A stretch of 64,000 nucleotides of DNA, from NCBI GenBank assembly GCA_051530055.1, contig CM121341.1:18578784-18642783 (forward strand), written 5' to 3'. A program made the translations under genes and the position numbers. How positions within the stretch are numbered: position 1 is the first letter of the stretch; each line of letters opens with the position of its first letter. The notes under the pieces are model-generated. The model was not told where the DNA came from. It saw only the letters and a list, made by a program, of their open reading frames with translations, and did not search any database. Below, piece after piece: positions 1,991 through 60,419 of this stretch. Origin of the DNA: Neoechinorhynchus agilis (taxonomy: Eukaryota > Animalia > Acanthocephala).

Positions 1991-3249
1991 TTATTTAAAA
2001 AATTCATGCCTATCCACTCGACTATAACAACCCAATACTGACACTGAACTTTCATTGAGTGATCTAAACCGAAAATCGATTTCTTATGAATGATCGATTA
2101 AATTTTGTTGAGCTACGTAAGAAGAAATAACGACTTTAATAAGTATTTAAAATTAGCTATTATGCTGTGGCACGATGCACCAATACTTGATATATTTTAT
2201 TATAAAGATCTGGAGTAAAAAAGTAATTAAAACTGTAATCATAACGATCATTTTCGATGATAATTGTACGGCACCTTCAATAAATGGTTTTAAAATAGAA
2301 TGCAGAAATTAGCATGTAAAAAATGACTTGTTGTGGTACGTGCCAATTCTTGTAATAGATTCCGTTCAGCGTTCGGTTTTGAATTTTGTAACATCAATCG
2401 ATTTCAACATTACGCCAAAGCAATGCAAAATAATTTATGAACACAAAGTTTCCGCGAATTTCAATTGCTTTCCAGTACATTTATTTAAAAAACAAAACTC
2501 GTGCCAAAAGTAGACGAATGAATGATTTCTAAATACAATACAGAAACAACAAAATTAGTAAACATGTATAATCGACAAAACCTTCTCAATATCAAGAGGA
2601 AACTCATAATATTGAACGGGTATCACAATCTTCTACTGAGTGTATAATTTTGATGAGCAAAAGTCAATAAAGAAAAAGAGGAGTCTCTCAAAGCATTACA
2701 GGTTTCAGCAAAGATTGCTCAAGACAACCAAAGAAGAAAAGCAAAATTTAGTACTTCAGCCTCTCACATGCAATTGCTGGCGGCTCAACGGGCTGCCGAA
2801 GACGATTTAGTCGAAATGCAAGTAATACTCATGTTTCAAGGCATCTCCGCAAATGAATTACGTGCAAGTCGAAAACGCAGAACAGTCCGCAGACCAAAGC
2901 AGGAAACTTCGGAAAATTGCAACGTCCAAAAAAAGAATAATTTTTATATTAAACAAATTAAGTTCGGCTGATTCAGGATTTATTAGCGATGAACATGGCG
3001 TTTTAAGCGAAGATTTTATTACTCGAGCACAAATATTGAAACTGCCTATACTAATTTGACTTATACTCAAAGGAAAATTCGTTCCCCCCAATGAGGAATC
3101 AAACGCTTCACATTGCGCATCGTTATTTAATAGCAGCGCAATGTTGTGGACGGCAACAGATTTCGAACTAGCGATCGATCGTGATACAACGATGTTAAAC
3201 TTATGGAAGAAATTTAGCTTGTGTTAGTGGTCAAACGCGTGGTTATATA

Positions 3250-4500
3250 AACACGTTTTATTGATTTAGAAAAACGATCAATACACTTGCCAGCACCTAT
3301 CTTTGCTGAAGTTGTCTGGATGTCAGATGTTGAGGCAGGGAGGTGGGATTTGTCTTTGGAGTTTTACAGGAGAATGGCCGATTGGGAGTCTTTCCTTGTT
3401 ATCCGGTTATTAAGGAAAGATTGGACTTGGGGGGAGAAGGATTTTTGGTAGAGGGTGGTACGAGCGAGGGGGGGATGAAAAAGGTTGGGGTTCCGGGTGT
3501 TTACTAGGGACGAGTATTTAGAGATGAAAGAAGAAAATTGTGTAGGGGGTTGAAGAAGACGGAGGACGCTTTGGAGAAAATGGAGTGGAGGTGGGCGTCG
3601 AGGGGAGGGAGTGAAGTCCAGCATATTCTCGCTGCTCCCTTGTGGAAGGTTTTGAGGGAATGGAGAGCATTGGTGGAAAGGGCGACGAAAGTGAGGTAGG
3701 CGTATGTAACGATAGGGAGGATGACAGAGAGATAAAAGTGGGCAAGGTGTTTAGGGGAAACGCCGAGACGCCGGAGGAGTTTGAGGAGGTAAAGACGAGG
3801 GTTTGCTTTAGAGAATGTAAATGAAATTTGGGTATCCCATTTAAGGTTTTCTTGTAAAATCACGCCCAGTATTCGGAGAGAAGAGGAGCGTTGGATGGGG
3901 AGAGGGAGAGCCGCGGGGACAAGGTTGCGTATGAAAATGTGGGGGACAAGCTCAAAAGATTTGGATAAATTTAGGGAGAGGTTTAGGGCGGAGAGCGAGG
4001 AAATGAGATGGTTGAGCTCGTTCATGGTAGTGGAGAGGGAGAGAGACGGAGATGCGATGGTAATGACTGTGAAGTCATCGGCATAGAGAAAATATTTTAT
4101 TAGGGGGGAGTGAGGGGATGGAGGTCATTTAGAAAAATGTTTAAGAGGAGAGGGGAAAGTACGGCGCCTTGGGGGACCCCTTTAAATATGGGCAGAGAGT
4201 AGGAGCAAGAAGTTCCGCATTGAATATATTGTTCGCGGTTGGAGAGGAAAGAGGAAATCCAAGCGAGTTGCCAGGTTGGGAGGCCAAAGGAAGCACATGC
4301 TTGGAGGAGAAGGGAGTGATCAACCGACTCAAACGCCCTGGAAATATCCAGTTGCACGAGACGGACGGTTGATTCTGGATTGGAATCTAGGCTGCGCACA
4401 AGCGTATCGTAGATGCAGAGGAGGGCATCAGAACAAGAGCAATTGGGACGGAAAGCGAATTGGGAAGGGGAGATGTTACTTTGCGCAAGTTAAAAGCGAT
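3250..4500 (-). mobile_element. CR1/L2-like non-LTR element, 3' RT half
   Basis: LDISRAFESVDH, GVPQGAVLSP, (Y)ADD, RILGVILQENLKW; reverse-complement match to 22735-23960. Confidence 0.85.
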
Positions 4501-5382: not shown

Positions 5383-5456
5383 GGCCGAGTAGCTCAGTCG
5401 GTTAGAGCGTCACGCTAATAACGTGAATGTCGTGGGTTCGAGCCCCACCTTGGCCA
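5383..5456 (+). tRNA. tRNA-Ile (anticodon AAT)
   Basis: Complete cloverleaf: acceptor GGCCGAG/CTTGGCC, D stem GCTC/GAGC, anticodon arm TCACG-CTAATAA-CGTGA, T arm GTGGG-TTCGAGC-CCCAC. Confidence 0.97.
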
Positions 5457-10121: not shown

Positions 10122-11444
10122 TTCCGAAAAATTATTACCGATCGAAGACGAGAGTAAACCAGGATTCGATTTGGCTCGCTTTCTTCCGTATAAAAACGAC
10201 AACAAACGGACGTTTGTCAACATGCGAAAAAATTGTCCCAGTGGTATTTTCGTTTAAAACAATAGTTCCTCACCTGGATTAATTCTGGGTTGCTCATATC
10301 GGCAAAATCCATCAGCATGGTAAATTTTGACTTGTGGTGAAGATAATTCCCGGTTAAAAATCTTGTTCCTTCCGCTCTCTTTCCACAAAATAAATGCCAT
10401 CAAAATCAACGTAAACGTTTTTATAAACAAAAACCATATTTAAAATCTTCACACTGCAATGAATTTTTATTAAAGACATTTCGAACCTCGTTGGGTTCGT
10501 CATTTCTTAGCTGGTACGTCTTTTTGATTAAAATGAAAGCGCCCATCCATAGGTCGTGTAACTTTACTAAGCTTCGAGGACGAATAGTTCCGAGTCTTCA
10601 ACGAAACCAAATAAGTTTGTGTGTTTGTGATTGAATTAAAACCCCCGTTTGGTTAATGCAACAGGTCATATGATTATTCTCATCATTGATGAACAGCGCT
10701 CTTTCGAAGTATACGTGCTCCGCAGACGATTTTTTGTTGGGTGGTCGGCAGTTACAGCTTTTAATTCCGCGGTTGGCTTTGTGGTATTTCGGGTAAACGG
10801 ATATTCGCTGTCATCATGGAGGAAGCGCTGCTCTTGATTGTCTTCGAGATTTTGTGTCGGTGACTGCTGGTTTGTCCAACAGTTCAATTCTCATTTCCAT
10901 TCGATTCCACAGCCGTTTCGTTAGAAAAGGTGGTTCTCGTGTTGTCCATTCGCTGATGCGATGCCGTGAGGGCATTTCTTGACGCGGATTATACACTTTT
11001 ACCGCCTTGGTAACGGCACGATATTGTGCCGAAACATCGGATTTAATAAATTCCTTAGTTGTCGTCGCACTTTGGATTCTTGTCCTCAAATCCATGATTA
11101 TCGGGAGGAATGATTTATTTGATCAGTTGTATGGGTGATTTTTAACTCAATTTTTTATTTGATGAGTATCATCTTAATAGTCGTTCTAACGATTGAGTAA
11201 CAAAATTTGATGCTTTGCTTATTTATCCCACATAAACATGAATTCTAAAATGCTTGTGCCACATTTTAACGAATAAATTTCCCAGTTTTTTACCGGTCAT
11301 TGTAATCGATATAAATAATAAATAGACAGTCTTAGAAGCTTGACCATCTTTTCGTGCAGAGGATGTCTTGTCTTCTTCAACGAATTAAAAATTGAAGCTT
11401 TATTGTAATGAGCACATCGCTGACAAAAAAACAGAAATAGGAGT

Positions 11445-11590
11445 AGACTGATACGAATCACTGGCGATCAGAGAGCAGGAGCATTCCTCCTACAAAACAT
11501 AAGTCTGGCAGTGTAACGGGGAAACGCTGCATCCATCCTTTTGACCGTTACACCAGGACGGCAGCTGAGTGATCCAGAGCGGTGGTGTAA
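11445..11590 (+). mobile_element. CRE-like 3' tail fragment
   Basis: Matches 8750-8860 and 42485-42620 (ITGD.RA..FLLQNISLAV; ...gtgatccagagcggtggt). Confidence 0.7.
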
Positions 11591-11732
11591 AAGATTACAT
11601 GACATTTGCGATATGTATCATAGTTCTAAAAACAATCAATATTTCGTGAATGTTCCATAACGATAAAATCAAAGTTTAGATCGAAGAATACTACAATCTG
11701 GATGTAAGAGCTCATTTTTCAATATTTCAGAT

Positions 11733-14700
11733 ATGAGCTGGCCGGTATTTTCCATATTCGACGTTGACAAAGACTTCCTTGCGATACCAGGATCGTCGAG
11801 TGTTATTTATACCTCTCTTGTGGACGAGAGTAGAATGCTTTATTGCCTTCAAAATGGCAAAATTCTTATTATTGATTGCAAAAATCAGTTGGATAGTTTC
11901 AATGCTTTTGAATTGCAGTTGGTGTGTGCCATTTACGATAAATCGTCGCAGGCATTAGTTACCATCGGTCAAGATAAAAAAGAATATATAATTTTTAAAA
12001 TCTTTAATTTGAAGAGGGAGCGCTGTCCACTTTGTATCCGCAGTGAAGAATTAAATGAGCATCCAACAGCGGTCTCTGTGGATTCTTTAAGCAATAGAAT
12101 GGCGCTAGGAATGGATGGCGGGTCGATTTTTATAACCAAGGGGTCAATCTATAGAGGAATCAAATCTCGTAAGGAATTGTCGGAAACGAAGTATCCAATT
12201 CGTCATTTATTCTTCGCAAAATCGACGGATAATCCATATATTCATCTGTTTGTCATTTCAGATTCGTCGGTATTTCTAATCAAAAATGCACTAACTCGGT
12301 CACTTACGCACGTTTTGATTGAAGATCGTAGTTGCGATGCTTGTTCCCTTTCTGAAAAACAAGAATTAATATTGGCCTCTGGAAACTTAATAACGATTTA
12401 CGAAGAAGATACTAGAAAAAACTCATTAGTCGTTGATAGGACTGTTAAATGTGTCTCTAAGAGTGGCGATTACCAACTTCTTGTCGGATTTGTAGATAAC
12501 ATATTCAGGATTTATGAATTGAAAGGAAAATTTATTGCTCTTGAGTGCAGTCTAAATGCTTGCATTATTCAACCTGTGTCGGAATCGAAATTCAAAATCT
12601 TGGACAAAAATTCTACAATATACACGATTAATCAAAAACCAATAGAAACTCGTTTGGCTATACTTTGCGGAAAAAACAAATCAGAAATTCGGACTGAAGT
12701 TTTTAGCACCATCTTTCACTTTCTATCGCCTTTTCATTTTATGCACGGCAGTTGTTCAAATTTATAGGTTTTTAAAAAGTAGGTAAACTCAATTCTTTGG
12801 TCAAAGGATGAATAAGGCCAGCATTAATTCGATGAAATTTCTGCTGCTCCCAAAGGTTTTATCATATAATTAAATTTCATGCAGGATCGCATTCAGTTGG
12901 AAAGATATTCCTTTTTAGCGGTTCAAACCCCGATAGGTTTTCATGTTATTTAATATTTCGTGGGCAAAATCCACCTCTTCAGATATCTACAAATATTGGT
13001 TATGTTATGGGTTATCTTAGGCTAAGGAGCGCGTGTTTGCCGTAGTTGACACTAGCTCCCCGAACCACGGGTACGGCAAACCCGCGCTCTTTGGCCTCAG
13101 GTAACCCATAAAATAACCAATATTGTAGATATCTGAAGAGGTGGATTTTGTCCACGAAATATCAAATAACATGAATACTTATTGGGATTTGAACCGCTCA
13201 ACAGGAATATAATTAAATAAGATTATAGATCATAGATATTGATGTTTGTTTCCCTGACTCGAAGATGTCCGCATTCTTGATGTAAATACGATTTGGCTAT
13301 CGAACATTGCAAAGCATCCGCTTCGTTAAATCTATTAAACCGAGTTTACTACAATTATGGGAACTATCTATTCGCGCGTGGCGATTATGCTGATGCAGTT
13401 GATCAATATTGTTTGTCGGGTGCCTTGAATGCAATCGCCTTTGATGCTATTGAAAAGTTCATAAACGTCGATCAAGCCAGTCACTTAATTTCGTTATTGG
13501 AAAGAAATATCGATTATCTAGATATAAGTCGTCGCTCGTTGTGTCAACTGTTGAGTCTTATGAGCGGTAAGTTAGCTGTTCACAACACACAGCCCCTCAG
13601 CGATCGGCTAGAGGAGTTGTCAAAAACCAGCAGCGAAGTGGATAATTTTATTGATTTAGTTATCTCAAATAAAGATGACGAAAAGGTTATCCGGACATCG
13701 ATGCAAAACCTTGAACGTCTCGTTCATGGACGACGATTTTCTGAATTGATCCTGCTGATCAATACTGGTCTAAGTGAAGAGTTCGGTGATGAAGTCGAAA
13801 AGGTCATGAAGACGATGGTCGTCTCCGAGTCACGCATTTTTGAACAAATTTTAAAGAATTTCCCTGGACTTAAATTAAAACTACCAACCTTAATGCAATT
13901 TGACCTCGAAACATTCGCTGATACATTAAAGCAAGGTCTTCAACTCATGCCAAATTAGGAATCGTTTCCAATGGCCTGATAGATTTTGCTGTTGATTGGC
14001 AGTTCGTGATAGCTGACGTCAACTAAGAACTTTTTAAAGGTTAACTGATATTTACACTTTAAATGATCAATCGAATTGCAATAACCGTTTATCAGGTATC
14101 TTTTTACGTTCTCAAATATTTTTTGCGTGATTGTTGAAGCTTTTAATGGTATAAGTTATCGCGTTCAGGTCAACACATCAACCTGCTAATATCCGCATAA
14201 AAATTTTGATTGAAGACTTTGCGGTAAGTGAATCCGCTATTGAATTGTCGAACGAAAATAAAAGCCATTATCTGCTAATGAATGAATTATTTACTCCATC
14301 GTCATTGGACGTTACGAAGGCGATCTATACGAATGCAGGATTGGATAGCGAACTCTTGGATGTGTTTATGGATAAAGGAAAATACAAAGAATTGATTGAA
14401 TATTTGCCAAATATAAATGAAAGACGTGATTGGATACGAGTTTTTAAATTTTTTTGCAATCATCTGGACGATGAGTTTTTTGATCGATTATAATTGAGTC
14501 AAAATTGCTAACTAGATCGGTGTAGTTAAATGCTACGAGCTGCTTTGAAATTGGGAATTTACTTTTTGTAGAATTTCTGCTTCCGCGTAAAAATTTGCCA
14601 TCTACTAGATGGAAACCGTAGTCCATCCTTTCCGAGAAATATTTGTTCTCCACTGCAAAGCAATTTAGGACTTCCTTGGTTTTTATTAGCTTTAGCAAAT

Positions 14701-15324
14701 GTATATTAAAAGTCAATTCTGGCTGTTTGAAGCTAACCATTTTGGATACAGCATTATTTTCCGACCAATACAGGTATTTCGCAATTAGCCCGAAAAAAAC
14801 GATTGCCAATAAGTATCGAAAACAATTTCGGCGGATATACTGATTTTCATATTCATGATTACTAATCCTTCCTTTTTCGCAACTTTGACCATCTTTATAT
14901 TCCTCAGTTATTGGACCTTAATAAGTTTATGAATATAATGACATTGAAGGATACAATCTCAATTTTAAGTGAATATGATGTTAATCTTGGACTGGTGCGT
15001 GAATACTTTGCAACAACACTCACTGAGTCGATCAATCAAATCAATGAACAACATGAAAACGTAAAGTCACTGGAGATATCTTTGGATGAAACCGATCTAG
15101 CGATAAATTTGATCGAAAGAGAAGGAGTTCAATATGAATGTAGGAATTGTCAAATATGTAACTCTGCCTTAGATCTTCCGTCGGTTCACTTCATGTGCCG
15201 ACATTCGTTTCATAAAGGATGCTTAGAAGCCTACTCAGAAGATCGCAAGTGTGTTTTGTGCTCAGATGAGCACAAAAAAGTGACTAATCGTGCAAAATCC
15301 TTGCTTCAGTTTTTGGAAAGATAA
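11733..15324 (+). CDS. VPS11: Vacuolar protein sorting 11 (HOPS/CORVET core), 4 exons; proposed join 11733-12679, 13286-13953, 14174-14486, 14883-15324 = 789 aa
   Basis: N-terminal beta-propeller-like region, LCGKNKYDLAI..YGNYLF.RGDY..A..QY repeat region, C-terminal RING CQICNSALDLPSVHFMCRHSFHKGC. Gene identity is strong; exact junctions are inferred (non-GT-AG). Confidence 0.9.
12680..13285 (+). other. Putative non-canonical intron 1 of VPS11 (AT...AA)
   Basis: ATCAGAAATT...TTGATGTAA. Homology places the junction within the duplicated AAAT, with no GT or AG there; an in-frame TGA precedes exon 2. Confidence 0.7.
12905..13210. repeat. Imperfect palindrome (~140-bp arms) of inverted PLE-type pseudo-LTRs, with a hammerhead core in each arm
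   Basis: The arms are reverse complements; CTGAAGA-G-GTGGA..TCCAC-GAAATATC at 13133-13163, antisense copy at 12950-12990. Confidence 0.85.
13954..14173 (+). other. Putative non-canonical intron 2 of VPS11 (AT...AA; an AT...AC end at 14182 is also in frame)
   Basis: ATTAGGAATC...TTCAGGTCAA, restores the frame. Confidence 0.5.
14487..14882 (+). other. Putative non-canonical intron 3 of VPS11 (AT...AA)
   Basis: ATTATAATTG...TCCTTCCTTTTTCGCAA, restores the frame and has a polypyrimidine tract before CAA. Confidence 0.5.
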
Positions 15325-17035
15325 AAAAGTGAAATCGATTGAATGGTAAATGTGATAGAGACGAACCACTCGAGACATTCCTTTTCGGGGTAACATGTAA
15401 AAAAGTACAATTCTCCTCATTGTAAAACACTGCTACCATCGACCGTGACTTGGAACTGAGGATGTCTAAATATGCCGCATTTATGTTCGTACGTTTTCTG
15501 ATGAAACAATCGGGTAAACGGAAATTGGTTGTCGTTGATTGAATTTGTCTCGCCGTCTCATTTAAACGAAATCTTCAATGATAAAATTAGCTATGCGATT
15601 AAGGGACCTATTGATTCGATCGAATAAGGCCCAGAGTGCATGTCCTTGCTGAATTGCATTATTTCAAAAAATGGCACCAAGTTGAAACAGTGCATTTTAT
15701 TGGGATTGGCTTACTGGCGTGCACGTGCAGTGACCTGCAGTTAATAATTTTTAGACTCTCGCGTAACTAGAAAATTTTTTAATGCCTAATAACAGTTCCG
15801 CAATGTTTATTGATTTCAAGCATTGCAAAGCTTATTCAAAACTTTTGCTTTTCACTCAATGCAACATCGCAATTTAGTGTTATCGTTCTTTTTTTCGAAA
15901 TACAATCTTTAATTTTAATTGGGTAGAATTTTAAATGGAGTTTACGTCTCGACAGTTTACCATAAGCCTAGATTCTCGTCACGGTTTTCTGATCATCCAG
16001 CTCTGCTATTATTTAGCAATTTTTGAATTTATAAAGATTTACCAAGATAAAAATAAACCTCACTTAATTTAAACTGTACTTGCTCTCAAGTTTCTGCATT
16101 ATTTGCTCCCATGCTATAAGGACAAATTATATTCTTAGTGAGACACTTTTTGCACCCAATGGCCCCTCGCGTAAAATTGGACTAACATTCCTTGAAAGTA
16201 ACTGTTACAACTAGCAAGCTTCTCCCTTTGCTTGACGCTAAATTTGACCACAGCACGCGGGATCGGATTACTACTTTTCCTAGATTTCAGGAAAAATAGA
16301 AGCTTACAACTAAACTTATTCTAAAAACACTTCCGATCTTCATCGTCCACGTCTGGTTAAACTCTCCGCCACCCAATATCATGGTAACCTCTGGTTCTTC
16401 ATGTACGTCCAACCTAATCAACCACATCCAACCCAATTAGATTGACTCTCCTTATTTGGATCTTCCGATAGCTAAAACATCACGAAAAAAATCGCTATGT
16501 TAATGTAGCTTCGCCTGAGTTTACAGCGACCAATGCCGAAATGGATGTGTCTGAAAATATGAATTTGGATAACAATGAGGTCTATGTGAAAAGAATCAAC
16601 CAAGGTTCTTTCGGATAGAGTACATGGTCTCTTTAAGGGGAGGATCGCGAAACGGGCATGAGATTGACCCTTCCATAAATGGTCTAATGCGATCATCAAA
16701 GCCACAGATTCGCATAACTTCCCCTTGCCACCACACCCTAATTTCATAGCCGGGTCTTTCACTTCCCCATACCTCGATTACTGCTTGTGGAGGAAAGCAT
16801 GATTTCTCAAACACACGGCAATATTACTAACGGCACTTTTTAGAATCTTATTATTTGGGACTTTGATAAAATATCCCTCTAAGAAACGAATCTAAATTGC
16901 CAGCGCTTAACATCAAGCTTTTTAATTCAGCAATCCAACTTTTTGTCGCTGTCACAGATTTGTTCCTTTCGGTTTGATTAACAACTTCCTCGCTGAAAGC
17001 ATTGTCTCCTTTCTCACGGCTACTAGCCGTATGAT

Positions 17036-20289: not shown

Positions 20290-23200
20290 TGTTGGATTTC
20301 GTCATTGAGGCACTCCTCACTGCAGATGTTTTGAGCACGATGCAGAAAGCCTTTGAATATATTAACTTTTGTGCTTTTGTTGTGGACACTGTTCCAAAGT
20401 TAACAGAAACATGGCTTACCCCCTTCAACGTCGATTCAGTCATCCTTCCCGGGTACTCTTCCTTCCATACATACCGCGATGACCGCCCAGGGGGTCTCAA
20501 TTTACTTAAGGCAATCGCTACCTTACTCTTTATCTCTCACTGGCTCCCTTCAAAGCCCTGATTTAGAATTGATCGTAGTTCATTTCATAGTTCCTCTGAG
20601 AAACGGCCTTAGAGAATTTACAATTGCTGGCGTCTATCGCCCTCCGGCCTATCGACCTAGGTCCTCCTTGCTCCAAATTGACTCCATGATGGAGCTCATA
20701 AACTCTACAAATTCGCACCATTTCTTAATTGCAGGGAATCTCAATGATCTATTTCCTCTTCTACCCTTCTCCGAGTTGCGTCAATTTCTTGACTTCCCAA
20801 CTCGTCTTGACGCTCAATGATAAACGTGATCATCACATCTAAATTTTATAAAATTGTTCAACTCTAACATCCGCACATCTCACTCTGACAACACAAATGA
20901 CCCTTCCTTGGCCATGTCCTCACTAACCCCACTCATAGAAAATTCCCTAGCTTCGGCAATTCCCAAGAAATTCATTTGGATCTCCAACCGCGACTTTCCA
21001 TGGATAACCCCCATTCTGAAAATTCTACAAAGGCAAGCTTCTAAGGCCCATCGCAATAACTCCCCAGACTCTCCCCGTTTACAAAAAGCACTTACTAACA
21101 AAATATTACACTTTCGGTGAGAATAATCCCGGTAATTACATATTTTATTTATTCGAAATATTTCGCGAGGTATCCTCGCCTCTTCAGTCATTGTTAGTAA
21201 GTTTTACACTAAGTGTTTAGCGGTTACCCCGATTTTCTAGTAAAAAGCACACGCCCCTACCATCCTTCAACGACTACATTAAGCATCCCTCGCCTCGTAA
21301 ACTAACTCCTCCTTAACCCCTCTCATCCTTGCCTCCACTCATCTCTCATCTGCCTAAAACCACTAATCTGCACCCTACCAAATCTGGAAATTTTCGCTTC
21401 GCCCCTCAGAAGCGAAAAATACCTTGGACGCGAACACTACCTCACCTCTTACCACCACCTATTCAACTCCCAATATCTTCTTGCCCCCCCCCGAGTTCAT
21501 CCCGCATACGCAGTTCCCACCCTTATGGTCCCTACACTCAAATCACCCCTAACTACAGTGTCCACCCACGAATCCATTACCCCCGAACTACCCCATCGGT
21601 CAACTTCCATCCCCCCTCTCTCTACGCAGCTTCAACCCCCTCCGTCAGTGTCCACCCCTCATGTCCCTTCTAAACATCCCTTTCCAATAATCTTTTATTC
21701 TAACATCCGCAGCCTCCTCCCCCAACTCGTTACTTTCCCCACACGCTTCTCCTTCCGCCTTGATAAAATTTTCTCAAACATCAGGCAATGCTCGTGCACT
21801 ACCAAACTCCCCCCGATCGCCTCGTCTGACCATTGTTCCATCCTTCTCTCCCACTCATCACCTCAAAAACGTTCCTTCTCCGACCCCTACGTTGTCTGGG
21901 ATAAGCGTGATCATCATACACACGCCTTTGCTGCATGTGTTAATTCTCTTATCACGCAAAACCGCTTTACCATCTTTGGCACCGACCGCTCGATTGCAAT
22001 GGGCTCTTTGTCAAATCTAATAGAATCTGCGATGAAGGCCTCCATTCCGCGCAAAACTATACGAATATCAAACCGCGACCCTCCATGGTTCTCGCCTTTT
22101 CTTAAAACCCTTCAAATGCAGGTCACCAAAGTTTTCCGGTGAGGCAATCCCGCTTACCCCTCCCTCCACACTGACCAAACGCATCCGAATAGCCCGCAAA
22201 GTATTCCTCTCATCTCGTCTCTCGTCTGTTCCCAATCGAAACTGGTGGCGTGAAATAAAAAATGTCACTGATCGTGGTAGATCAGCCCCCTTCGCATCTC
22301 TCCCCAAATTTGATCTCTTCTCAATCCTCAACACCATGAATAAAAACCTCTGTCCTCCCCAAACCTCCTCTCCATTGTCCCAACCTCCCTTCTCACTTTA
22401 GGACCCGCCCATTCATACATGCCCTTCCTTAGTTTCCCTCTCGAAATCCTAGAGATCCTTAAACGCCTGACCCGCCATTCTTCCCCTATTTCGACTATCC
22501 GAAATTGGGCCATTCGTTTCATCATCCGGGAACTTATCGATCCTCAAACGCACATAACGAACCTTAGCTTTCTATTAAGCTCTTTCCATCGTGGCTTAAG
22601 GAAGCCAGTTTCGTCCCACTACCCAAAAACAATAAACGGATTTCCCCCACATCCTTTCGTCCCATTTCTATCCTCTCACCTTTCTCTAAAATCTTAGAAA
22701 AATGTTTTAAAACCCGCTTACTTCACTTCTTCCTCAAAAACATATAACCTTCCCAATTCGCTTTCCGTCCCAATTACTCTTGTTCGGATGCCCTCCTCTG
22801 CATCTACGATACGCTTGTGCGCAGTTTAGATTCCAATCCAGAATCAACCGTCCGTCTCGTGCAACTGGATATTTCCAGGGCGTTTGAGTCGGTTGATCAC
22901 TCCCTTCTCCTCCAAGCATGTGCTTCCTTTGGCCTCCAAACCTGGCAACTCGCTTGGGTTTCCCCTTTCCTCTCCAACCGCAAACAATATATTCAATGCG
23001 GAACTTCTTGCTCATCTTCTCTACCCATATTTAAAGGGGTCCCCGAAGGCGCCGTACTTTCCCCTCTCCTCTTTGACCTTTTTCTAAATGGCCTTCATCC
23101 CCTCACTCCCCCAACCAAATATTTTCTCTATGCCGATGACCTCACAGTCATTACCATTGCATCTCCGTCTCTCTCCCTCTCCACTACCATGGACGAGCTC

Positions 23201-23960
23201 AACCATCTCATTTCCTCGCTCTCCACTCTAAACCTCTCCCTAAATTTATCCAAATCTTTTGAGCTTGTCCCCCACATTTCCAAACGCAACCTTATCCCCG
23301 CGCCTCCCCCTCTCCCAATCCAACGCTCCTCTTCTCTCCGAATACTGGGCGTGATTTTACAAGAAAACCTTAAGTGGGATGCCCACATTTCATTTACATT
23401 CTCTAAAGCAAACCATCGTCTTTACCTCCTCAAACTCCTCCGGCGTCTCGGCGTTTCCCCTAAACACCTTGCCCACTTTTATCTCTCTGTCATCCTCCCT
23501 ATCGTTACATACGCCTACCTCACTTTCGTCGCCCTTTCCACCAATGCTCTCCATTCCCTCAAAACCTTCCACAAGGGAGCAGCGAGAATATGCGGGACTT
23601 CACTCCCTCCCCTCGACGCCCACCTCCACTCCATTTTCTCCAAAAACGCCCACCGTCTTCTTCAACCCCCTACACAATTTTCTTCCTTCATCTCTAAATA
23701 CTCGTCCCTAGTAAACACCCGGAACCCCAACCTTTTTCATCCCCCCTCGCTCGTACCACCCTCTACCAAAAATCTTTCTTCCCTCAAGCCCAATCTTTCC
23801 TTAATAACCGGATAACAAGGAAAGACTCCCAATCGGCCATTCTCCTGTAAAACTCCAAAGACAAATCCAACCTCCTGCTTCAACATCCGCCATCCAGACA
23901 ACTTCAGCAAAGATAGATGCTGGCAAGTGTATTGATCGTTTTTCTAAATCAATAAAACGT
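20290..23960 (+). mobile_element. CR1/L2-like non-LTR elements (two juxtaposed APE portions plus RT)
   Basis: LTETWL, GVYRPP, AGNLN, PTR..LDK, SSDH; RT ORF 22817-23815 with YADD; strongly C-rich sense strand. Confidence 0.85.
21118..21200 (-). mobile_element. PLE pLTR fragment with hammerhead core
   Basis: Reverse complement reads CTGAAGA-G-GCGAGG-ATA-CCTCGC-GAAATATTTC; same core as 46813-46846. Confidence 0.75.
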
Positions 23961-24658
23961 GTTTATATTTTTATCAACAGATCGTTAAGACAACAGATCG
24001 TTGATTTCACATCTTAGTACTACGATTTTAATGGAATGAATTTATTCAAAAATGATCAAGAAACTACATTTATTGTATCCGGAGTTTCACCGAATGTGGA
24101 CGATGAAGATCGAAAATGGATTGTAGATTCGAGAATAAACCGATAATCTACGGATTTAGCGTTCAATTTGCAGGCGAAAACGGATCAGAGAAATACATTG
24201 CAAGTCGCTTCGTCTGCATTGTTCGCGCTGGTGAAATTAATAAATTAGAAGCGCAAAATGAAAAATGCAACCATTGAAAATAACGTTGATTTGTGCGAGA
24301 ATTCAATTCATGGAAAATGCGACGCAAGAATGCAAACCGAAAAACGAAAAAAAATGCAATATCTTCCTTGGGATGAGATTTTATTAAATGTTATTGGCCG
24401 AAATAAATATAAATCAGATGGAAATTGACGGCAATTTCGATCTAAATGTTTTCCTTCGTTTTTGGAAATGGACTTGTGCCATCTTCAAATTCTGATCACT
24501 ATAAGACGAAAGGTCATAAGGAGACACAATACCAAATAAAAGACGAAAAAAAAGGGTTTTTAAAAATGCTCATTTTTCTCATTATGGGATTTATTTCTTT
24601 CGTGGGGATAATTGATGCCACCATTATTATCGATTGCAGATTAGCGAAAACATTTGAA

Positions 24659-26577
24659 ATGATTACTTGTACCGGCTTATCTCGACTGGTCCCTTTTAAG
24701 CTTCTCAATTTTAACAGTCTAAGATTCTCATTCAGGTTTGTTTGTGTTCGAATTTCTATGCCATCCGATATTTTAGTAGATTGTTATCGAAATTGGCGCC
24801 TACAAAATTTCCAGAGTGGAAAAGAGGCGTAGTAATTTTTCCGCAAAAAACCTCCGTTGAAGACCTCAGGAAAAACTTTCGGCCTTCAAAAGATGGCGGA
24901 TTCTACTACGATCACAGATTGATTGTTCGCGAGTATCCTGAGCGTTATACCATTGATGAATTGGACACAAGGCGAACTGGTGGCGCGGATCCCGATACGG
25001 GGCGAAAGCTTTTTCCTCGAATCGGAGGCGGAGTGAAGAAGACGTGGTTATGGGTGGATCTAAAAAGATTAGGACCGAAATATGGTGAACCTCTAATGCA
25101 GTCATTTTGGGACATTCTATTTTAGCTCTTAAAATGACAGCGATATGCGAGCGGGTCATTAAAATTGTAAAAAGCGATTGCCATACCGCATTCCTTGCCC
25201 TTGTTGGGCACGCTGATCAAGTTCGTTACTTAATCGCTACCGAAACGATGAAACCGGGGGATCTGATCAGAACTTATGGATATATTCCAGAAAAAGAAGG
25301 TTAGTATAGCGATGAACACTGGTAAAATTGCGAAGGAAATCTAAATAGATCACGATTGCACGATTGAGATTGATTTAGAAATTCCGTTAATCCCTGCAAA
25401 TGTCCGTAGATCAATGTTATACAAACATCTAAACCTTCACCTGAATTCCCAACAATTCTTGTACCATCAATTTCTAATGACCATACTCAAAGATGTTTGA
25501 ATTAAAATTTATTGTAAAGAAATTATTCATTATAGTTTCAGTTTCAATTAGCGATGTTTGATTCAGAAATAGATTTATCCTGAAAATTTTCGGCTTTTTC
25601 GTTGGCCTTCTTCAGTCAATCTACAATTTAAAAGAGGCATTGTCAAATAGTTTATCCCATGGGACTCGCAGGCTGAGTTTGTAGTCAGCTTTGTTGCCAA
25701 CAAAAGTACCTGTTTGCTGGATCATGATGACTTCCATAGTCACTCTGTCGCGTCTTACGTCACTCCTCGCATTGATGGCGTCGAGGTTCATGCGAGGAGT
25801 GACGTAAGACGCGACAGAGTGACTATGGAAGCCATCATGATCCACCAAACAGGTACTTTTGTTGGCAACAAAGCTGACTACAAACTCAGCCTGCGAGTCC
25901 CATGGGATAAACTATTTGACAATGCCTCTTTTAAATTGTGGATTGACTGAGGCCGAAAATTTTCAAGATGAATCTATTTCTGAATCAAACATCGCTAATT
26001 GAAACTAAAATTAAAATTTATTACTTCTTGAGATGAAATCTTACAACATCTTTTAATGCGCATGCCTTTCCACTTAGTTATTCCGAAAACGAATGATTGT
26101 TGGCCACTTGGAGCGTTACCGACCGGTACAACTGTTTGTTGTATTGAAGCGGAACCCGGCCAAGGAGCTCTGTACTCATGTCAAGCTGGTTCCTACTGTA
26201 CTATCGTATCCAAATCAGACGGTCGTTGCGTTATTAGAATGCCAAATCACATCAAAAAGCACCGAGGCGCTTTTGACATAAGCGTTCTGGAACAATGCAT
26301 GGCTGTGGTTGGGAGATGTTCTAATCTAGGTCACATGCACGAGCATTTGGGAAGCGCAAATGCCCTTCGTCATATTGGATATAGACCCAGGAGCGGACTC
26401 TTCCACAAAAAGACCGGCAGATTTGGAAAACGGAGAAGAGGACCTAAGCCAGTTCACGTCGTCAATCCTCTGAAACTGGAAATGGAAGAGGCATTTAAAG
26501 ACGATCCAAATTTCGTTCCATGCCCAGCAACAAAATCTGTTCGGTACACTTGGTATGATTTTAAGCTTGAAGAATAA
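24659..26577 (+). CDS. MRPL2: Mitochondrial ribosomal protein L2 (uL2m); exons 24659-24735, 24777-25084, 25126-25299, 26078-26577
   Basis: RRTGGADPDTGR..IGGG, LIATETMKPGD, PLGALPTGT...E.EPGQG, VGRCSN, RPRSGLFHKK; three GT-AG introns (41, 41, 778 nt). Confidence 0.93.
25536..26010. repeat. Near-perfect palindrome (~230-bp arms) of inverted PLE pLTRs inside MRPL2 intron 3
   Basis: Arms encode the GIY-YIG C-terminus (RDRVTMEAIMI); hammerhead core at 25581-25620 (-); possible TSD ATTAAAATTTATT at 25501-25513 and 26010-26022. Confidence 0.9.
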
Positions 26578-34148: not shown

Positions 34149-34390
34149 AAGTACCTTTAAAGTTCTATAAAAATTTGACAGAAGATTAAATTAAGTAATT
34201 GCTAAAAAAATGCTATTTTAAACTGCTGAATATTATGATGACCGATTTTTATAATTATTTTAAAATAAATTGTAAAAGCGAAAACCAGAACACCGAAATT
34301 TCTTAACCGGTAGTACGCCGTCAATATCAGAACGTATTTTCCGTTTGCACATTGCGGCACCGCTTCATTTTTGATCAGATTTTTGTAGCT

Positions 34391-35049
34391 CTACAGCAGT
34401 TTTTCCAACAATCCTTTGAACAGACGTTCGATAGACCATATAGGTTTCCTTCCACGCAGTTCCATATTTGATCTATTCGCCATCGTAATCAAGTTTGCAT
34501 CGCCTTCGCCATAAAATATCGAGTTCTTCGATAATCCAAGATTGTTTTCCTCAAAAGCCAATATTTCACCCAAATCACAAAAATACATCATATGCTCAAT
34601 TATTCTCGTCATCGGAAAATTATCCTCGTAAATGTAACTCTTAACATCACTTGTAAAATTCTCATAGTGAAATCGCTCTTCGGCGAGTACGTGGTCATGT
34701 TCGACTTCTGGTTCATCATACGGATCATTGGCGTATCCCCCAGTGGACCACCACGAATTTCACCTCTTTGTCTAAGTTTCTGTAATCGTTCCTCCTTTTC
34801 ATTTTGCTCTATGGCTTTCAAAAATAAATGATCCTCAAACGTTGGCGTGCTACATCCCATTCCCGGATGTTTTTCTTTAACAAATATATATTTAGCAATC
34901 TTGTCCTTGATCCATTCTGGGCCGTAGTTCAACGCCTTATTCCATATGAGCCATGATTTCCTCAGCACACCGATGCAGTATTTCATTATTATCCTCTTCG
35001 GAATATATACCAAGCTTCCTAACCACGAATTTAGCATCAGCCTAAACAA
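34391..35049 (-). pseudogene. Frameshifted protein-like sequence of unknown family (duplicated at 56884-57545)
   Basis: Protein-like segments in three different frames; no family recognised. Confidence 0.3.
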
Positions 35050-35400
35050 AAAGTGGGCAATGATAGCAAAAAGGATTCGGCGGAAATCTCGAGTAATCCC
35101 TCAAACGTTTATTTTTACTGTTCGCTGCAGAAAAACGGTCAGCTGGTAGTATATCAGGAAAACTAAAACTCGGTTCTCATCATGAAATTAAATTTAAATT
35201 TCAAGTACCGGCAAGCTTAATGCTAATCGACGAAAAGTTTTTATATGAACTCACGTGGTTGTTCCAAATGATTTACTGCTAAGGCATCAACAACCAACAT
35301 AGTAAACAAGAATGTTTGCCTTCCACAAATAACAGGTTCAAATGAATCGCTTCAATTTCGATATAAGCATTGCCATCTACAAGTAAAAAACGACTTTTCG

Positions 35401-36039
35401 ATGATATTGTTTTCAAGGATAGCTGTCGTTCTCCTTTTGCTCTTGAGCGTGTCAACAAGCTTCCAGTGGACTAATAACAGAATCCAATGGCTGCAAAATG
35501 GATTTCGAGAATTTCGACCTGTGGAGGAACAACAATACAATGCGGTTTTCTATCAGGGCGCCAAATCTCCAGTGAAAATTATCGGTAATCGCCCGAGGCC
35601 ACACCTCCATAGATTATTTGGGGATCCGTCTATTCAATTCGCCATTTTTGAAGCTCCTCATGTTGAGGGCGATGTAGAGCCGTTTCTAACGGAATTATCT
35701 TCAGATAGCAAGAATGTGGACGAGCAAGCTAAAGCGACTCACACAGAACATGACACACCTAAAAAAGAAATTATTGAAATACTTATTGAAGCTCTTAAGA
35801 ACATAAGAGACAATCACAACTGGACAGTTGCAACGGAAGTTTCCTCTGAAGGACAAGCCAGTATAGATGCGTTTACTTCACCCGAAGAGTACTACGAACC
35901 GAACGTAGAAGATTTGACAAGTCAGTGCGGATACGAGAATCGAATTCAAGTACTCAGCGATCTTCTTCGCCTAGAAGAACTTCGGTATCTCGCTTACCTT
36001 AAATCGCATGTTACAGATACCCAAAGGCAACATATATGA
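35401..36039 (+). CDS. Putative secreted protein, 212 aa, unknown family
   Basis: Intact ORF with signal-peptide-like N-terminus MILFSRIAVVLLLLLSVSTS; open in both duplicate copies. Confidence 0.6.
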   Translation: MILFSRIAVVLLLLLSVSTSFQWTNNRIQWLQNGFREFRPVEEQQYNAVFYQGAKSPVKIIGNRPRPHLHRLFGDPSIQFAIFEAPHVEGDVEPFLTELSSDSKNVDEQAKATHTEHDTPKKEIIEILIEALKNIRDNHNWTVATEVSSEGQASIDAFTSPEEYYEPNVEDLTSQCGYENRIQVLSDLLRLEELRYLAYLKSHVTDTQRQHI

Positions 36040-36699
36040 TACGCTGAAGGCAATACCCTACTTTAACACCTAAATGCCAATTTTAATTATCTTTAGTAAA
36101 AATCATTTTAATCTAGAGTTTTACAGGTCGCCAATGGATATTACATAAGGAGCTGTGCCCGAGCACGAAGCCTACCAGGTTGCTATCAAATATTGGTTTG
36201 AAATGTTGACTCAAATATTCGAGGTGTTCTAAAGTCCAAAGGATAATTTGATATTTGAACTATGTGGAGGAATTTTTATCGAAAATTCTTTGATAAAGTA
36301 ACAACAGGTAAAAATCGATATATTTCTGCGAGCAATACTAAAAATAGAACGGCAAAGCTAATATTTAAAGCTTCAAAAATACGGGCTTTTCTTATATCCT
36401 TACTAAATAATCTGTACTCGCTTTTGTTAACAATTTTCAGTCGGTGTAAGATTAAGTTATGAATTCTAAGCAATTTAATAGGAAAAACGAAAACAAGAAA
36501 TTCCTAACAAACGCCAAATTTTGCTATTAATAAGTATTGTAAAATATTATTGTTTGGAAGTGAGATGGAAGATGATAAAAATCACTTCACTTGTTTAACA
36601 AAAAAAGGTTCATGTTTGCTCCGAATTAAGATTATTCAAAATAGTTTTTTACACTATCCAATCAATTGCCATAAAACTAACACGCTGTAGCGGATCTGG

Positions 36700-39356: not shown

Positions 39357-39393
39357 GTTTTGTGCTTTATTATTGTAAAAGGGCATATTTCGT

Positions 39394-40330
39394 AAGAGCA
39401 AATCAAAGTAATGCTGGAGGCCTAACAAAGAACTGTCAGAAGAGGGTGTTCTTGATCCGGAACAGAGCCCCGTGTGAAGATAATTCATCAACTCGTTCGC
39501 ACAGCACCGAAAGTTGCGGTTGAAGATTATCAATCTTGCTTCAACATTAGAACAAAAAATGCAGCTTCCTAGAAGACTCAACCGGTCTGGAGTGATCAAT
39601 TCTATCCCAATGACCAGTTTCTAAAAATCTTTAACGATAGTTTGCCTGGACGAATCATCTTCTACGTTCATCACTAAAATCTCGAATTTCACAGCATCCA
39701 ATTCAATGCCAATTTTCGCTGTCTCATGCGGTCGAAAGGCATTGAGTAAAATTCTCGTCAAAAGAACTTATTCGCCCTTTTATTTTTGTGGTCAGAGATC
39801 CCTCAGAAACATCAACAGCGGAAAACAATAGTTTAGGGAACGCAAAGAGACGCATCCACGACAACTCTGAGCTAATCTCGATGCTGTCCGTCAATAGAGA
39901 GGTGAATCTCTTTGCGGCCTGATATTGCGCGCCCCTTGGGATTCTTTTCAGAACGTTCCTGGGTAGAACTCGCACAATATTCACTACAAATGGAATTTCA
40001 TTTTGTACTGGTGCACACCATCAATGGACTTAGGAGGTGAACTGGAACCATCCGCTTCGTGAATTACGGGATCCATGGCTCCTAAGAACTCCTGTTTTCG
40101 TCAGGGAGAAAATCCCATCACAAACCTCGAGGATGCTGTTGAGAAGCTCGGCCGTGTGGTACCCTTGGCTGATGAAGTTAGAAGTTGAGCAATGATGATG
40201 TTCTCCTCCCTTGACTTATTTTAGGCGGACAAGCTTCCCTCTTCATATTATGGTCTAGCATCAAGGTTCCGAGCGAAACGTGGAAACGGCATCGGTGTCG
40301 CCGGTAGTGCTGGCAGCCAGATATTCAATC
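39394..40330 (-). mobile_element. Internally deleted CRE-like remnant (duplicated at 54230-55168, + strand)
   Basis: Zinc-finger remnant, VLKRIPRGAQYQAAKRF, ITPDRLSLLGSCIF. Confidence 0.75.
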
Positions 40331-40448
40331 ATGAAAACAATCTAATATAGTCAACAAGAATTAAAGACCGAAAAATATTTCAGAAGACTAACTTCCGTCA
40401 AAAACAACCGACCTGATAAATAATCTTTAGAAAATAACGCTAAACCGT

Positions 40449-41045: not shown

Positions 41046-41429
41046 CTTTTGAACTCACCTTGTACACTACCAATAAAAGAACAAGTTCTTAGACCAATAA
41101 GTACTAACCTTACAAAGTATTCCGCTGATTCAGGTATCTGGAACAATCTCAGCTTGGTTGTGACGTAAAAACTGATATCTTCCGGGTACATCTCTAATAC
41201 GTTATAAAAGTTTCACTGACCGACATGGAATATGAATTTTTAAATTTGCTGGGAATTTGAATATCTGAGTATTTTTTATCAGAGGAACGCTGACTCTGAT
41301 CCGCATTCACAATATTTGATTAATAATAAGTTTATTTGATCTTTGGGTCCTCATAAACAACAATGCAGTTATTGATTTTGGAGCCGATTACGGGTTCGGT
41401 AGAGTGGTAGGGTTGAGAGGGGTTTTGAT

Positions 41430-60360: not shown

Positions 60361-60419
60361 TCCATGATGCGTTCACTTTCGGTCAATGAAGGCCCCCTTT
60401 CCGCGCAAAACAATACGAA

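Follow-up and report, generated by a model that had tools for sequence, protein, structure and literature searches.

The VPS11 locus of Neoechinorhynchus agilis (Acanthocephala; chromosome CM121341.1), on the + strand at 11733-15324 of the 64,000-nt stretch of DNA analysed (the window), raises the question of how a gene that looks alive can be interrupted by sequence that no homology-compatible pair of GT-AG splice sites removes. A preliminary description of the locus recognized four open, VPS11-homologous segments separated by three stop-containing interruptions (inserts 1-3), and this architecture is borne out. Each segment carries residue-specific VPS11 homology (155, 56, 26 and 106 bits, in order), with the native score reached by 0 of 40 shuffles. 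Moreover, translation of the sequence joined as originally proposed confirms 2370 nt encoding 789 amino acids plus a stop, with no stop codon or frameshift among the 789 codons.

The encoded protein has the organization of the VPS11/PEP5 family, namely, an N-terminal beta-propeller, an alpha-solenoid and a C-terminal RING finger with eight zinc ligands. Pfam searches returned PF23341 (2.5e-24), PF23266 (7.6e-16) and RING hits, with PEP5_VPS11_N and VPS11_N matching residues 30-298, and every named protein among the 703 relatives found at E<=0.001 is VPS11-like. All eight zinc ligands of the RING finger fall in invariant alignment columns, and the other residues invariant in the orthologue alignment are also present. 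The central solenoid is poorly conserved and shortened, and with 789 aa and 20-22% identity to orthologues the protein as a whole is short and highly divergent. In GenBank the gene is split into P0001 (520 aa), which starts at the same position as our exon 1, and a separate 128-aa protein, P0003, corresponding to exon 4. No VPS11-like protein beyond these two pieces and a decayed fragment was found in the annotated proteome of N. agilis, and no VPS11 product from RNA-derived sources was found in the protein collections searched. VPS11 thus appears to be the single usable copy in N. agilis, and it looks functional. The features of the locus are listed in the table.

Features of the VPS11 locus, in window coordinates (^ marks an exon-intron boundary or, here and in the text, a join).
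Feature	Position	Strand	Details and basis
Open segments	11733-12764, 13281-13955, 14155-14490, 14866-15321 + stop codon	+	
Exon 1	11733..12679	+	Start codon, beta-propeller, to ...LAILCGKN-K; Pfam, profile (154.7 bits, residue-specific), GenBank start
Insert 1	12680..13285	+	Stop-rich intervening sequence, 606 nt; exact ends ambiguous within AAAT direct repeat
Foldback	12905..13210		306 bp, MITE-like inverted repeat nested in insert 1; arms and self-hit
CCCTGACT	13252..13259	+	Branch-point-like motif in insert 1; 8-nt piece surviving in the decayed paralogue L001
Exon 2	13286..13935	+	YDLAIEHCKA... to ...TLKQ; orthologue alignment A1, 55.5 bits; end at 13953 under the originally proposed join
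Insert 2	13936..14155	+	Ordinary GT-AG intron as simplest reading, AAG^GTCTTC...TATAAG^TT; in frame, 220 nt
Exon 3	14156..14486	+	25.7 bits; 3' end uncertain, at least 14463 (...WIRVFKFFCNH) and at most 14490
Insert 3	14487..14882	+	Stop-rich intervening sequence, coordinates as originally proposed; GT-AG pair disfavoured
3' region of insert 3	14860..14907	+	Spliceosomal-looking; read from sequence
Exon 4	14883..15324	+	C-terminal region with RING finger, then TAA stop; 106.2 bits, RING Pfam; start shifts to 14908 if AG acceptor used

Junctions were scored with a profile built from 121 VPS11 orthologues. At junction 1, the 606-nt removal is the sole top-scoring solution (305.5 bits), whereas the GT-AG alternatives reach 259.2 and 283.2 bits, a cost of 22-46 bits, and the best join with any GT/GC donor or AG acceptor reaches 292.8 bits. 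The ten residues on each side of the insert contribute +19.6 and +16.7 residue-specific bits (0 of 100 shuffles reach the native values), and ...RLAILCGKNK^YDLAIEHCKA... aligns without gaps with 14 orthologues. The claim that a conserved motif fixes this junction at a place without GT-AG therefore holds, and no U2-type intron with GT/GC-AG ends accounts for insert 1 while keeping both the frame and the homologous residues. The AAAT direct repeat (12678-12681 and 13284-13287) allows five equivalent placements of the removed sequence, with the termini AA-GT, AA-TA, AT-AA, TC-AA or CA-AT; in all five, neither intron end is a G. Insert 1 displays no VPS11 homology in any frame, no Rfam match and no further copy in the 64-kb window. 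Its foldback has arms of 88 nt (91% complementary) and 53 nt (89% complementary) and a self-hit of 83.6% identity over 311 nt, and is internal rather than terminal; a GT-AG intron of MRPL2 likewise hosts a nested foldback. Towards the 3' end, CCCTGAC lies 28 nt from the boundary and the pyrimidine tract is weak, but because real local GT-AG introns also have weak tracts, the branch-point and tract test has little discriminating power.

At junction 2 the score landscape is flat, and a canonical GT-AG solution (303.2 versus 305.5 bits) keeps both frame and homology. Compared with the AT...AA placement proposed earlier (13954-14173, equally 220 nt), it merely exchanges GLQLMP, a stretch devoid of residue-specific signal, for VIAFRS. 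Its donor shares the AAG^GT exon end with introns of PES1 and MRPL2, and the predicted join is ...AAGCAAG^TTATCGC.... Insert 2 is thus most simply read as an ordinary GT-AG intron. The preliminary description had held that GT-AG splicing deletes homologous residues at all three junctions; this is true of junctions 1 and 3 but fails at junction 2, and because junction 2 has a good GT-AG solution, the non-canonical split is not gene-wide, as had been proposed.

The sole in-frame GT-AG pair at junction 3 (14440-14907) scores 280.7 bits, compared with 305-310 bits for many non-GT-AG joins. VFKFFCNH, which contributes +8.2 bits (native value reached in 0 of 100 shuffles), is lost with this pair, whereas LDDEFFDR contributes none. 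As with insert 1, no GT/GC-AG U2-type intron that preserves frame and homologous residues accounts for insert 3. Dozens of joins lie within 5 bits of one another, including GT(14475)...AA(14882) and TT, CG or TA...AG(14907), and the insert begins within 14464-14491 and ends within 14882-14907, with a length of about 390-440 nt. Its 3' region contains TACTAAT (14860-14866) followed by a pyrimidine-rich tract, CAA at 14880-14882 and the first downstream AG at 14906-14907; PES1 intron 3 ends similarly, with ACTAAT, a short tract and CAG. The minus strand of insert 3 is open throughout (131 of 132 codons, p<0.001), and no homologue was found; nor does the 64-kb window hold another copy of the insert. 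Overall, these scores support the view that a VPS11 that looks alive is interrupted by sequence no homology-compatible GT-AG pair would remove, at junction 1 and, less precisely, at junction 3.

The seven other introns inspected, three in PES1, three in MRPL2 and insert 2 of VPS11, are all GT-AG, as had been stated for the two neighbouring genes. The GTYAG consensus ascribed to ordinary introns here was not seen: local donors are GTAGTC, GTTTGT, GTCGGT, GTGAAC and GTTAGT, and their common feature is an exon ending in AAG^ or ATG^. The reported absence of the U12 5' consensus is correct. Indeed, the insert starts ATCAGAAAT, ATTAGGAAT and ATTATAATT match the U12 5' splice site at ~3 of 9 positions and leave the consensus ATATCCTT unmatched, (A/G)TATCCTT is absent from all three inserts, and ATATCC occurs in 0 of the 5 placements of junction 1. 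The U12 branch site TCCTTAAC, expected ~10-20 nt from the 3' end, is likewise not in the three inserts, the partial look-alikes being TCCCTGAC, 28 nt from the end of insert 1, and TCCTTCC in insert 3. A U11/U12-35K orthologue, pointing to the presence of the minor spliceosome, is encoded twice in the window (E=5.1e-32 to PDB 8r7n_C), and no minor-spliceosome snRNAs were found within these 64 kb. None of the inserts has terminal inverted repeats, no other copies occur in the window or in 12 kb of the decayed paralogue, and the boundary direct repeats are only 3-5 nt long (AAAT, CAA and TTTGA, where in-frame joins score at the top level), a combination that does not match DNA transposons or MITEs. 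Complementarity between the ends of insert 1 is imperfect (12 of 15 nt), and the end-pairing energies of the three inserts do not exceed those of 500 background pairs (p = 0.19, 0.49 and 0.38). A search of 12500-15000 for self-splicing group I/II introns or other Rfam elements returned only a sub-threshold SNORD61 (E=0.54). With their unique sequence, intron-like GC, nested foldback and TACTAAT plus tract, the inserts look like introns rather than transposons.

The preliminary description had allowed for an intact GT-AG VPS11 elsewhere; the only other copy found, L001, lies about 540 kb away on the same chromosome and is a decayed partial paralogue. In L001 both ends of insert 2 survive, together with 8 nt of insert 1, the exon-1-like and exon-2-like parts being joined as ...TTTATGAAT-CCCTGACT-GCAAAGCATCC; an 8-nt match of this kind somewhere in the 788 deleted bases has a calculated chance probability of about 0.01. 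Across the 388 codons compared, VPS11 and L001 differ by 16 nonsynonymous and 13 synonymous changes, giving a dN/dS of 0.34 (Fisher p=0.005); dS (0.053) is near the non-coding divergence (0.050), and coding divergence is 2.6% versus 5.0% in non-coding sequence (p=0.003). Only 29 substitutions underlie the test, and gene conversion could account for the uneven divergence along the locus (0.9% to 11%). A pseudogene, unless inactivated very recently, would be expected to show dN/dS of about 1 together with stops or frameshifts, unlike the values and the 789 intact codons seen here. Given the remnant of insert 1 in L001 and the dN/dS between the copies, the gene appears therefore to have been under selection while carrying insert 1: the comparison indicates that inserts 1 and 2 were in place at the time of duplication and that purifying selection acted afterwards, with the 8-nt remnant as the basis for dating insert 1. 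This dating covers inserts 1 and 2, and nothing in it bears on insert 3. On such a short timescale the open reading frame itself is weak evidence, because the decayed L001 is also free of small frameshifts over about 1.2 kb.

We tentatively favour, at a little under an even chance, the reading in which inserts 1 and 3 are non-canonical introns, specific to the lineage and removed from RNA, insert 2 being an ordinary GT-AG intron. Inserts 1 and 3 probably originated by insertion of unique DNA flanked by 4-5-nt direct repeats, at sites that the leech and locust orthologues do not share, and would be cut precisely from the pre-mRNA at non-GT...AG boundaries, neither end being a G in insert 1 and at least one end being non-canonical in insert 3. 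We infer that removal takes place at the RNA level and by the spliceosome. Against this reading stand the odd clustering of two such introns in one gene when the seven others are GT-AG, the existence of in-frame GT-AG pairs around inserts 1 and 3, one of which GenBank uses, and the absence of both the U12 5' splice-site and branch-site consensus. To our knowledge, efficient handling of an A...A (or T...A, or C...T) terminal pair by the major spliceosome has no precedent (cf. the G1/G-1 and A1/C-1 interaction).

Cryptic canonical splicing is an unlikely but credible alternative, in which the inserts landed in exons and the GT-AG pairs 12652-13314 and 14440-14907 are now used, giving a protein without about 20 and 24 residues, with the homologous codons beside the inserts left as intronic relics. 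Both pairs are in frame, P0001 uses the first, the donor GTTTGG is similar to GTTTGT, a genuine donor in PES1, AG 14906-14907 is the first AG after TACTAAT and the pyrimidine tract, and an origin by insertion would agree with the short direct repeats at the ends of the inserts; the predicted joins are GAAACTC^CATCCGC (12651/13315) and GGATACGA^TTATTGG (14439/14908). However, the first would delete the most conserved 20 residues of the region (-46 bits, of which 36 are residue-specific) and the second VFKFFCNH (-25 bits), in a gene with dN/dS of about 0.34, and the cryptic donors lack the AAG^ or ATG^ exon end present in 6 of 6 real local donors. Moreover, the codons said to be relics remain fully open and have kept their register. 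We regard as distinctly unlikely a dead or dying gene, in which this copy would have become a unitary pseudogene or a null allele only very recently, within a lineage of massive gene loss, and the inserts would simply be disruptions. Published work reports some 45% of metazoan BUSCO genes as absent from N. agilis (PMC12256650), the protein is short and has diverged strongly, retroelements and segmental duplications abound in the region, and a decayed partial copy exists that itself has no small frameshifts. Nevertheless, the low dN/dS and a coding divergence half that of non-coding sequence have accrued since a duplication already carrying inserts 1 and 2, and no other VPS11 was found in the annotated proteome. 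Two large non-transposon insertions without any small lesion, and no stops or frameshifts in 2370 nt, are also unlike usual neutral decay.

A single gene-restricted AT...YAA class for all three inserts, with terminal Gs replaced by A through altered specificity or A-to-I editing, is improbable. AT-AA does restore the frame at each of the three junctions, as was claimed, and terminal As read as Gs give ordinary-looking sites, e.g. TTTTTCGCAG^C after TACTAAT; AT-AA is also the commonest non-canonical terminus of minor introns (PMC10639083), and the U11/U12-35K gene lies in the window. Yet TC-AA parses all three too, which leaves little meaning in the shared dinucleotides; more than 100 types of dinucleotide pair fit at junction 2 and likewise at junction 3, a shared pair is expected by chance given this freedom, and junction 2 has a better canonical solution. 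The 5' ends differ from the U12 consensus, and no evidence was found for editing-created sites or an altered spliceosome, end pairing at background level leaving no long terminal duplex for editing. AT-AA ends are thus a permitted, not established, reading of the termini, and a distinct class is not supported by these sequences. Errors of a hybrid long-read assembly from pooled worms, affecting the inserts or the terminal bases, are very improbable. The assembly combined ONT, little HiFi and Illumina data from pooled individuals with MaSuRCA/Flye, purge_dups and Hi-C scaffolding (PMC12690905), and the locus lies in a duplication-rich region; however, remnants of inserts 1 and 2 occur at the independent paralogous locus, neighbouring genes have clean GT-AG introns, and 4-6 G-to-A miscalls exactly at intron termini are implausible. 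Finally, germline-limited inserts might be excised from DNA in somatic nuclei between the AAAT, CAA and TTTGA repeats, as ciliate IESs are. The 4-, 3- and 5-nt repeats allow in-frame joins that score equal to any other, and the source DNA came from whole worms. By contrast, the 3' signals of insert 3 are of spliceosomal type, the ends of insert 2 are canonical, repeats of this length could arise by chance, and no DNA elimination is reported for N. agilis in its genome literature, making this extremely improbable. We know of no precise intragenic DNA excision in animals.

If RNA confirms the precise removal of insert 1, it would be an animal intron without a terminal G and without minor-spliceosome signals in a gene under purifying selection, challenging the rule of G/G or A/C as first and last intron bases and extending non-canonical splicing past tunicates to Syndermata. 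It is conceivable, though about as doubtful as a dying gene, that acanthocephalans carry a hitherto overlooked class of nuclear introns without GT/AG ends or U12 signals, with short direct repeats at their borders and precise removal through a relaxed or novel mode of splicing. Should such a class be real, genes would be split or truncated in annotation, as VPS11 is, because standard predictors cannot model such introns, and part of the reported 'massive gene loss' in acanthocephalans would be an annotation artefact. The splitting and truncation of VPS11 in GenBank suggest re-checking acanthocephalan gene-content estimates with aligners that tolerate non-canonical junctions. Were the GT-AG models correct instead, the locus would exemplify exon insertions rescued by cryptic sites; were the gene dead, it would be a core trafficking gene caught during loss.

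Non-canonical introns are known from fast-evolving lineages, including tunicates (PMC13326754) and Amoebophrya, in which 3-5-nt direct repeats overlap intron boundaries (PMC7789003). U12-type AT-AA introns (PMC10639083) recall the AT-AA reading of the inserts, and N. agilis does encode U11/U12-35K, but their defining 5' splice site and branch site near the 3' end are missing here. Nonconventional introns of euglenids (PMC4770533) likewise have variable non-canonical borders, but belong to an unrelated lineage and are defined by a stable secondary structure that draws their ends together, a feature not found in the VPS11 inserts. New introns of Daphnia, formed by double-strand-break repair (PMC3020277, PMC3443670), are similarly lineage-specific, with unique filler and short direct repeats at their boundaries, but use GT-AG, in contrast to the homology-fixed boundaries of VPS11. 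The introns and introner elements of Amoebophrya (PMC7789003) share with the inserts the lack of fixed terminal dinucleotides, the ambiguity of ends created by boundary repeats and a parasitic host with rapid protein evolution; they occur as repeated families whose intron ends pair through terminal inverted repeats of 8-20 nt, whereas inserts 1 and 3 are single-copy in the available sequence and show end pairing at background level. In the appendicularian tunicates Fritillaria and Oikopleura (PMC13326754), the phenomenon is genome-wide (up to 95% of introns), with characteristic termini such as AG-AC or AG-AT and documented U2AF and snRNA changes, while in VPS11 it would concern one or two introns of a single gene, among nine inspected, with other termini. 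The tunicate non-canonical U2-type introns are spliced precisely; like the putative ones of VPS11, they lack GT/AG ends, lie in the nuclear genome of an animal from a fast-evolving lineage and are of a kind that standard predictors miss.

An exhaustive HMMER search with the joined protein from 11733–15324 returned 703 relatives, the named ones being VPS11/PEP5 from across eukaryotes, and Pfam detects the N-terminal propeller and C-terminal RING of VPS11. Identity to VPS11 orthologues is only 20–22%, and in a PDB sequence search the protein was too divergent for use. Homology is residue-specific in each of the four open segments, which contribute 154.7, 55.5, 25.7 and 106.2 bits, respectively, when shuffled in turn against a profile made from 121 VPS11 orthologues (native score reached by 0 of 40 shuffles in all four). 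As stated in the preliminary description, its three excisions give 2370 nt, that is, 789 codons and a stop. GenBank splits the gene into two models, P0001 ('hypothetical protein ACOME3_004457 [Neoechinorhynchus agilis]', encoded on CM121341.1 from 18,590,516 onward and matched by the joined protein) and P0003, leaving out exon 3. Beyond these and P0004, a fragment from a second locus, the protein collections hold no VPS11-like protein of N. agilis, and the supplementary material published with the N. agilis genome makes no mention of VPS11. The split annotation is a concrete case of non-canonical junctions, or of a broken gene, distorting the gene-content statistics of this species.

Coordinates of the VPS11 locus, its paralogue and other features (window positions unless a contig is given)
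Feature	Position	Strand	Description
VPS11 open segments (four)	11733–12764; 13281–13955; 14155–14490; 14866–15321		
GenBank model P0001	intron GT(12652)–AG(13314)		exon 1 + exon 2; ends at TAG within insert 2; 520 aa, truncated
GenBank model P0003			part of exon 4; 128 aa; separate RING protein in GenBank
Insert 2, GT-AG candidate	13936–14155		in frame; AAG/GTCTTC...TATAAG/TT
Foldback in insert 1	12905–13210		nested, MITE-like, 306 bp
ORF antisense to insert 3	14447–14917	minus	157 codons with flanks
Paralogue locus L001	CM121341.1:19,131,706–19,144,068 (L001 5071–8061 vs window 11106–15987)	reversed	partial and decayed paralogue covering the VPS11 locus as a whole
LINE-like retroelement, three copies	3245–4477; 22032–23968; 60386–62135		91–97% identity; reverse-transcriptase ORFs
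tRNA-Ile(AAU), two genes	5383–5456; 63185–63258		identical
Foldback in large GT-AG intron of MRPL2	25624–25947		long, MITE-like, unrelated to that in insert 1; arms give mirror-image ORFs (FIPWDSQAEF...)
Inverted segmental duplication	34379–41407; 53180–57557		large; 98.0–98.6% identity; flanks PES1/CPEB-like/Penelope-like element block
U11/U12-35K (SNRNP35) orthologue, two copies	40452–41054; 53508–54110	minus; plus	single-exon; one residue apart; within the segmental duplication
CPEB-like gene	42706–43941	minus	single-exon; RRM + CEBP_ZZ domain
Penelope-like retroelement, so it looks by translation reading	48235–50535	minus	directly upstream of PES1
OST-HTH/LOTUS-domain ORF	58238–58870	plus	

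Every in-frame join was scored against the VPS11 profile. At junction 1, across which ...TRLAILCGKNK/YDLAIEHCKA... aligns gap-free to the family motif KLExLFRKNLYxxAIxLA, the top join is a 606-nt removal (305.5 bits), compared with 259.2 bits for the GenBank intron, 283.2 bits for the other GT-AG pair and 292.8 bits for the best join using any GT/GC donor or AG acceptor, which bears out the earlier claim of a non-GT-AG junction here. Moreover, the ten residues on either side of insert 1 add 19.6 and 16.7 bits, both lost on shuffling (0/100 reach native). The removal has five equivalent placements within an AAAT direct repeat, with termini AA-GT, AA-TA, AT-AA, TC-AA or CA-AT. Judged from sequence, the position of insert 1 exactly between homologous codons, with neither end able to be a G, is solid. 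Precise removal would produce the exon join ...GGAAAAAACAA/ATACGATTTGG..., and the GenBank intron GAAACTC/CATCCGC.

Insert 2 has a GT-AG candidate equal in length to the excision proposed earlier, exchanging GLQLMP for VIAFRS. The profile landscape is flat here (303.2 bits for GT-AG versus 305.5 for the earlier join; maximum 306.8), GLQLMP carries no residue-specific signal on shuffling, and the donor carries the AAG/GT exon end found at the three introns of PES1 and at one of MRPL2 (ATG/GT at the remaining MRPL2 donor). We therefore treat insert 2 as a probable ordinary GT-AG intron, for which the predicted join is AAGCAAG/TTATCGC rather than ATGCCAA/CACATCA. The preliminary description held that GT-AG splicing would cost homologous residues at all three junctions; this is upheld at junctions 1 and 3 but not at junction 2.

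At junction 3, the sole in-frame GT-AG pair (14440–14907; join GGATACGA/TTATTGG) scores 280.7 bits and deletes VFKFFCNH, a stretch that conforms to the W-[IV]-x-[VA]-L-x-[YF]-F signature of the family and is worth +8.2 bits (0/100 shuffles reach native). Past ...CNH homology fades: LDDEFFDR has no signal and FDHLYIPQ only +3.3 bits (4/100 shuffles reach native). Many joins lie within 5 bits of one another, including the AT-AA join of the preliminary description (305.5), GT(14475)...AA(14882) (308.4), a TTTGA direct-repeat join (309.2) and TT-, CG- or TA-...AG(14907) (304–306). Towards its 3' end, insert 3 has a spliceosomal appearance, with TACTAAT at 14860–14866, a pyrimidine tract, CAA at 14880–14882 and the first downstream AG at 14906–7. 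Since no in-frame GT-AG pair spares VFKFFCNH, at least one end of this insert, 5' or 3', is probably non-canonical; the exons would then be joined in frame between 14464–14490 and 14883–14908. The antisense strand of insert 3 is open over its full length (131/132 codons), as in 0/1000 dinucleotide shuffles; this ORF has no Pfam match and no relatives in a 5.8-billion-protein collection. An orphan gene nested in the insert, or coding DNA captured by it, may account for the ORF, which does not show insert 3 to be a transposon.

An AT...AA parse does exist at all three junctions, as proposed, but it is not distinctive. The homology-tolerated ranges hold 133 types of dinucleotide pair at junction 2 and 105 at junction 3, and two of the five junction 1 pairs, AT-AA and TC-AA, occur at all three, so the shared AT-AA appears to be within chance, as the preliminary description half-conceded. 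Its local intron template, GTYAG...YAG, is not the norm among the local donors (GTAGTC, GTTTGT, GTCGGT, GTGAAC, GTTAGT and GTCTTC). Other parses were rejected: AT-AC makes a stop codon at junction 3, GC-AG breaks the phase, a twin-intron (stwintron) arrangement would need both outer termini to carry a G, GT-AG introns on the minus strand are displaced 4–12 nt from the inserts, and allowing for single-base homopolymer errors yields no GT-AG solution.

L001, found through P0004 (an 84-aa 'protein' annotated on it by GenBank), lies on the same chromosome ~540 kb from the window gene. It is 91–98% identical to the window in patches; four large stretches are deleted, and a LINE fragment stands in place of the sequence from exon 3 into exon 4. 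L001 keeps the two candidate ends of insert 2 and, between its exon-1-like and exon-2-like parts, the 8-mer CCCTGACT of insert 1 (window 13252–13259; probability by chance ~0.01 by our own estimate), which indicates that inserts 1 and 2 predate the duplication. The alignable coding sequence, 388 codons, differs by 13 synonymous and 16 nonsynonymous changes (dS 0.053, dN 0.018, dN/dS 0.34; Fisher p=0.005); dS matches the 5.0% divergence of non-coding sequence, compared with 2.6% for the whole coding sequence (p=0.003). Although the counts are small and divergence is patchy (0.9% to 11% between stretches), these values suggest that the window gene has been under purifying selection while bearing insert 1, which argues that insert 1 is taken out during expression.

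The inserts resemble local introns in GC content (0.33–0.37). They have no terminal inverted repeats, tandem repeats, Rfam matches or, in any frame, VPS11 homology or hidden VPS11 exons, and no further copies in the window or L001; catalogued RNA families and tandem repeats likewise offered no account of them. Pairing of their 5' and 3' ends does not exceed that of random pairs (p = 0.19–0.49), and end pairing like that of euglenid introns, introners or editing substrates was set aside. Inspection confirmed the noted lack of U12-type signals; the minor-spliceosome protein U11/U12-35K is kept in the genome (E=5e-32 to PDB 8r7n_C). The locust orthologue is intron-free in this region, and leech introns lie 3–11 codons from each junction, never at the same site or phase, a proximity expected by chance at one intron per 35 codons; the inserts therefore appear lineage-specific. 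Elsewhere in the window, strong negative GC skew at 20–24 kb and 60–62 kb is due to LINE-like copies. CPEB-like and OST-HTH/LOTUS families are typically germline RNA regulators.

Overall, we tentatively favour, at a little under even confidence, a gene in which inserts 1 and 3 would be non-canonical introns excised from RNA, the remainder being ordinary, with a GT-AG middle intron. Splicing at cryptic GT-AG sites, the choice made by the GenBank model, would cost conserved residues and seems unlikely, given that such joins score below non-GT-AG ones at junctions 1 and 3. Very recent disablement of VPS11 is less probable still: the lack of small frameshifts in L001 too means that an intact reading frame, taken by itself, says little over this span of time, but the purifying selection seen with insert 1 in place speaks against it. 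Nested within the favoured reading, AT-AA ends at all three junctions have a slim chance of being correct. An assembly artefact is decidedly improbable, and excision at the DNA level, rather than from RNA, even more so.

Introns and non-canonical splicing go unmentioned in both genome papers, and literature searches turned up nothing comparable for Syndermata and no relevant reports on non-canonical introns in acanthocephalans or rotifers. Lineage specificity and the AAAT and TTTGA direct repeats are consistent with new introns arising from DNA inserted as breaks are repaired (reviewed in PMC3020277, PMC3443670); inserts 1 and 3 share direct repeats with such introns but lack their canonical ends. 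Known parallels to non-canonical introns of this kind are those of tunicates (PMC13326754) and those of Amoebophrya, with boundary repeats of 3–5 nt (PMC7789003).
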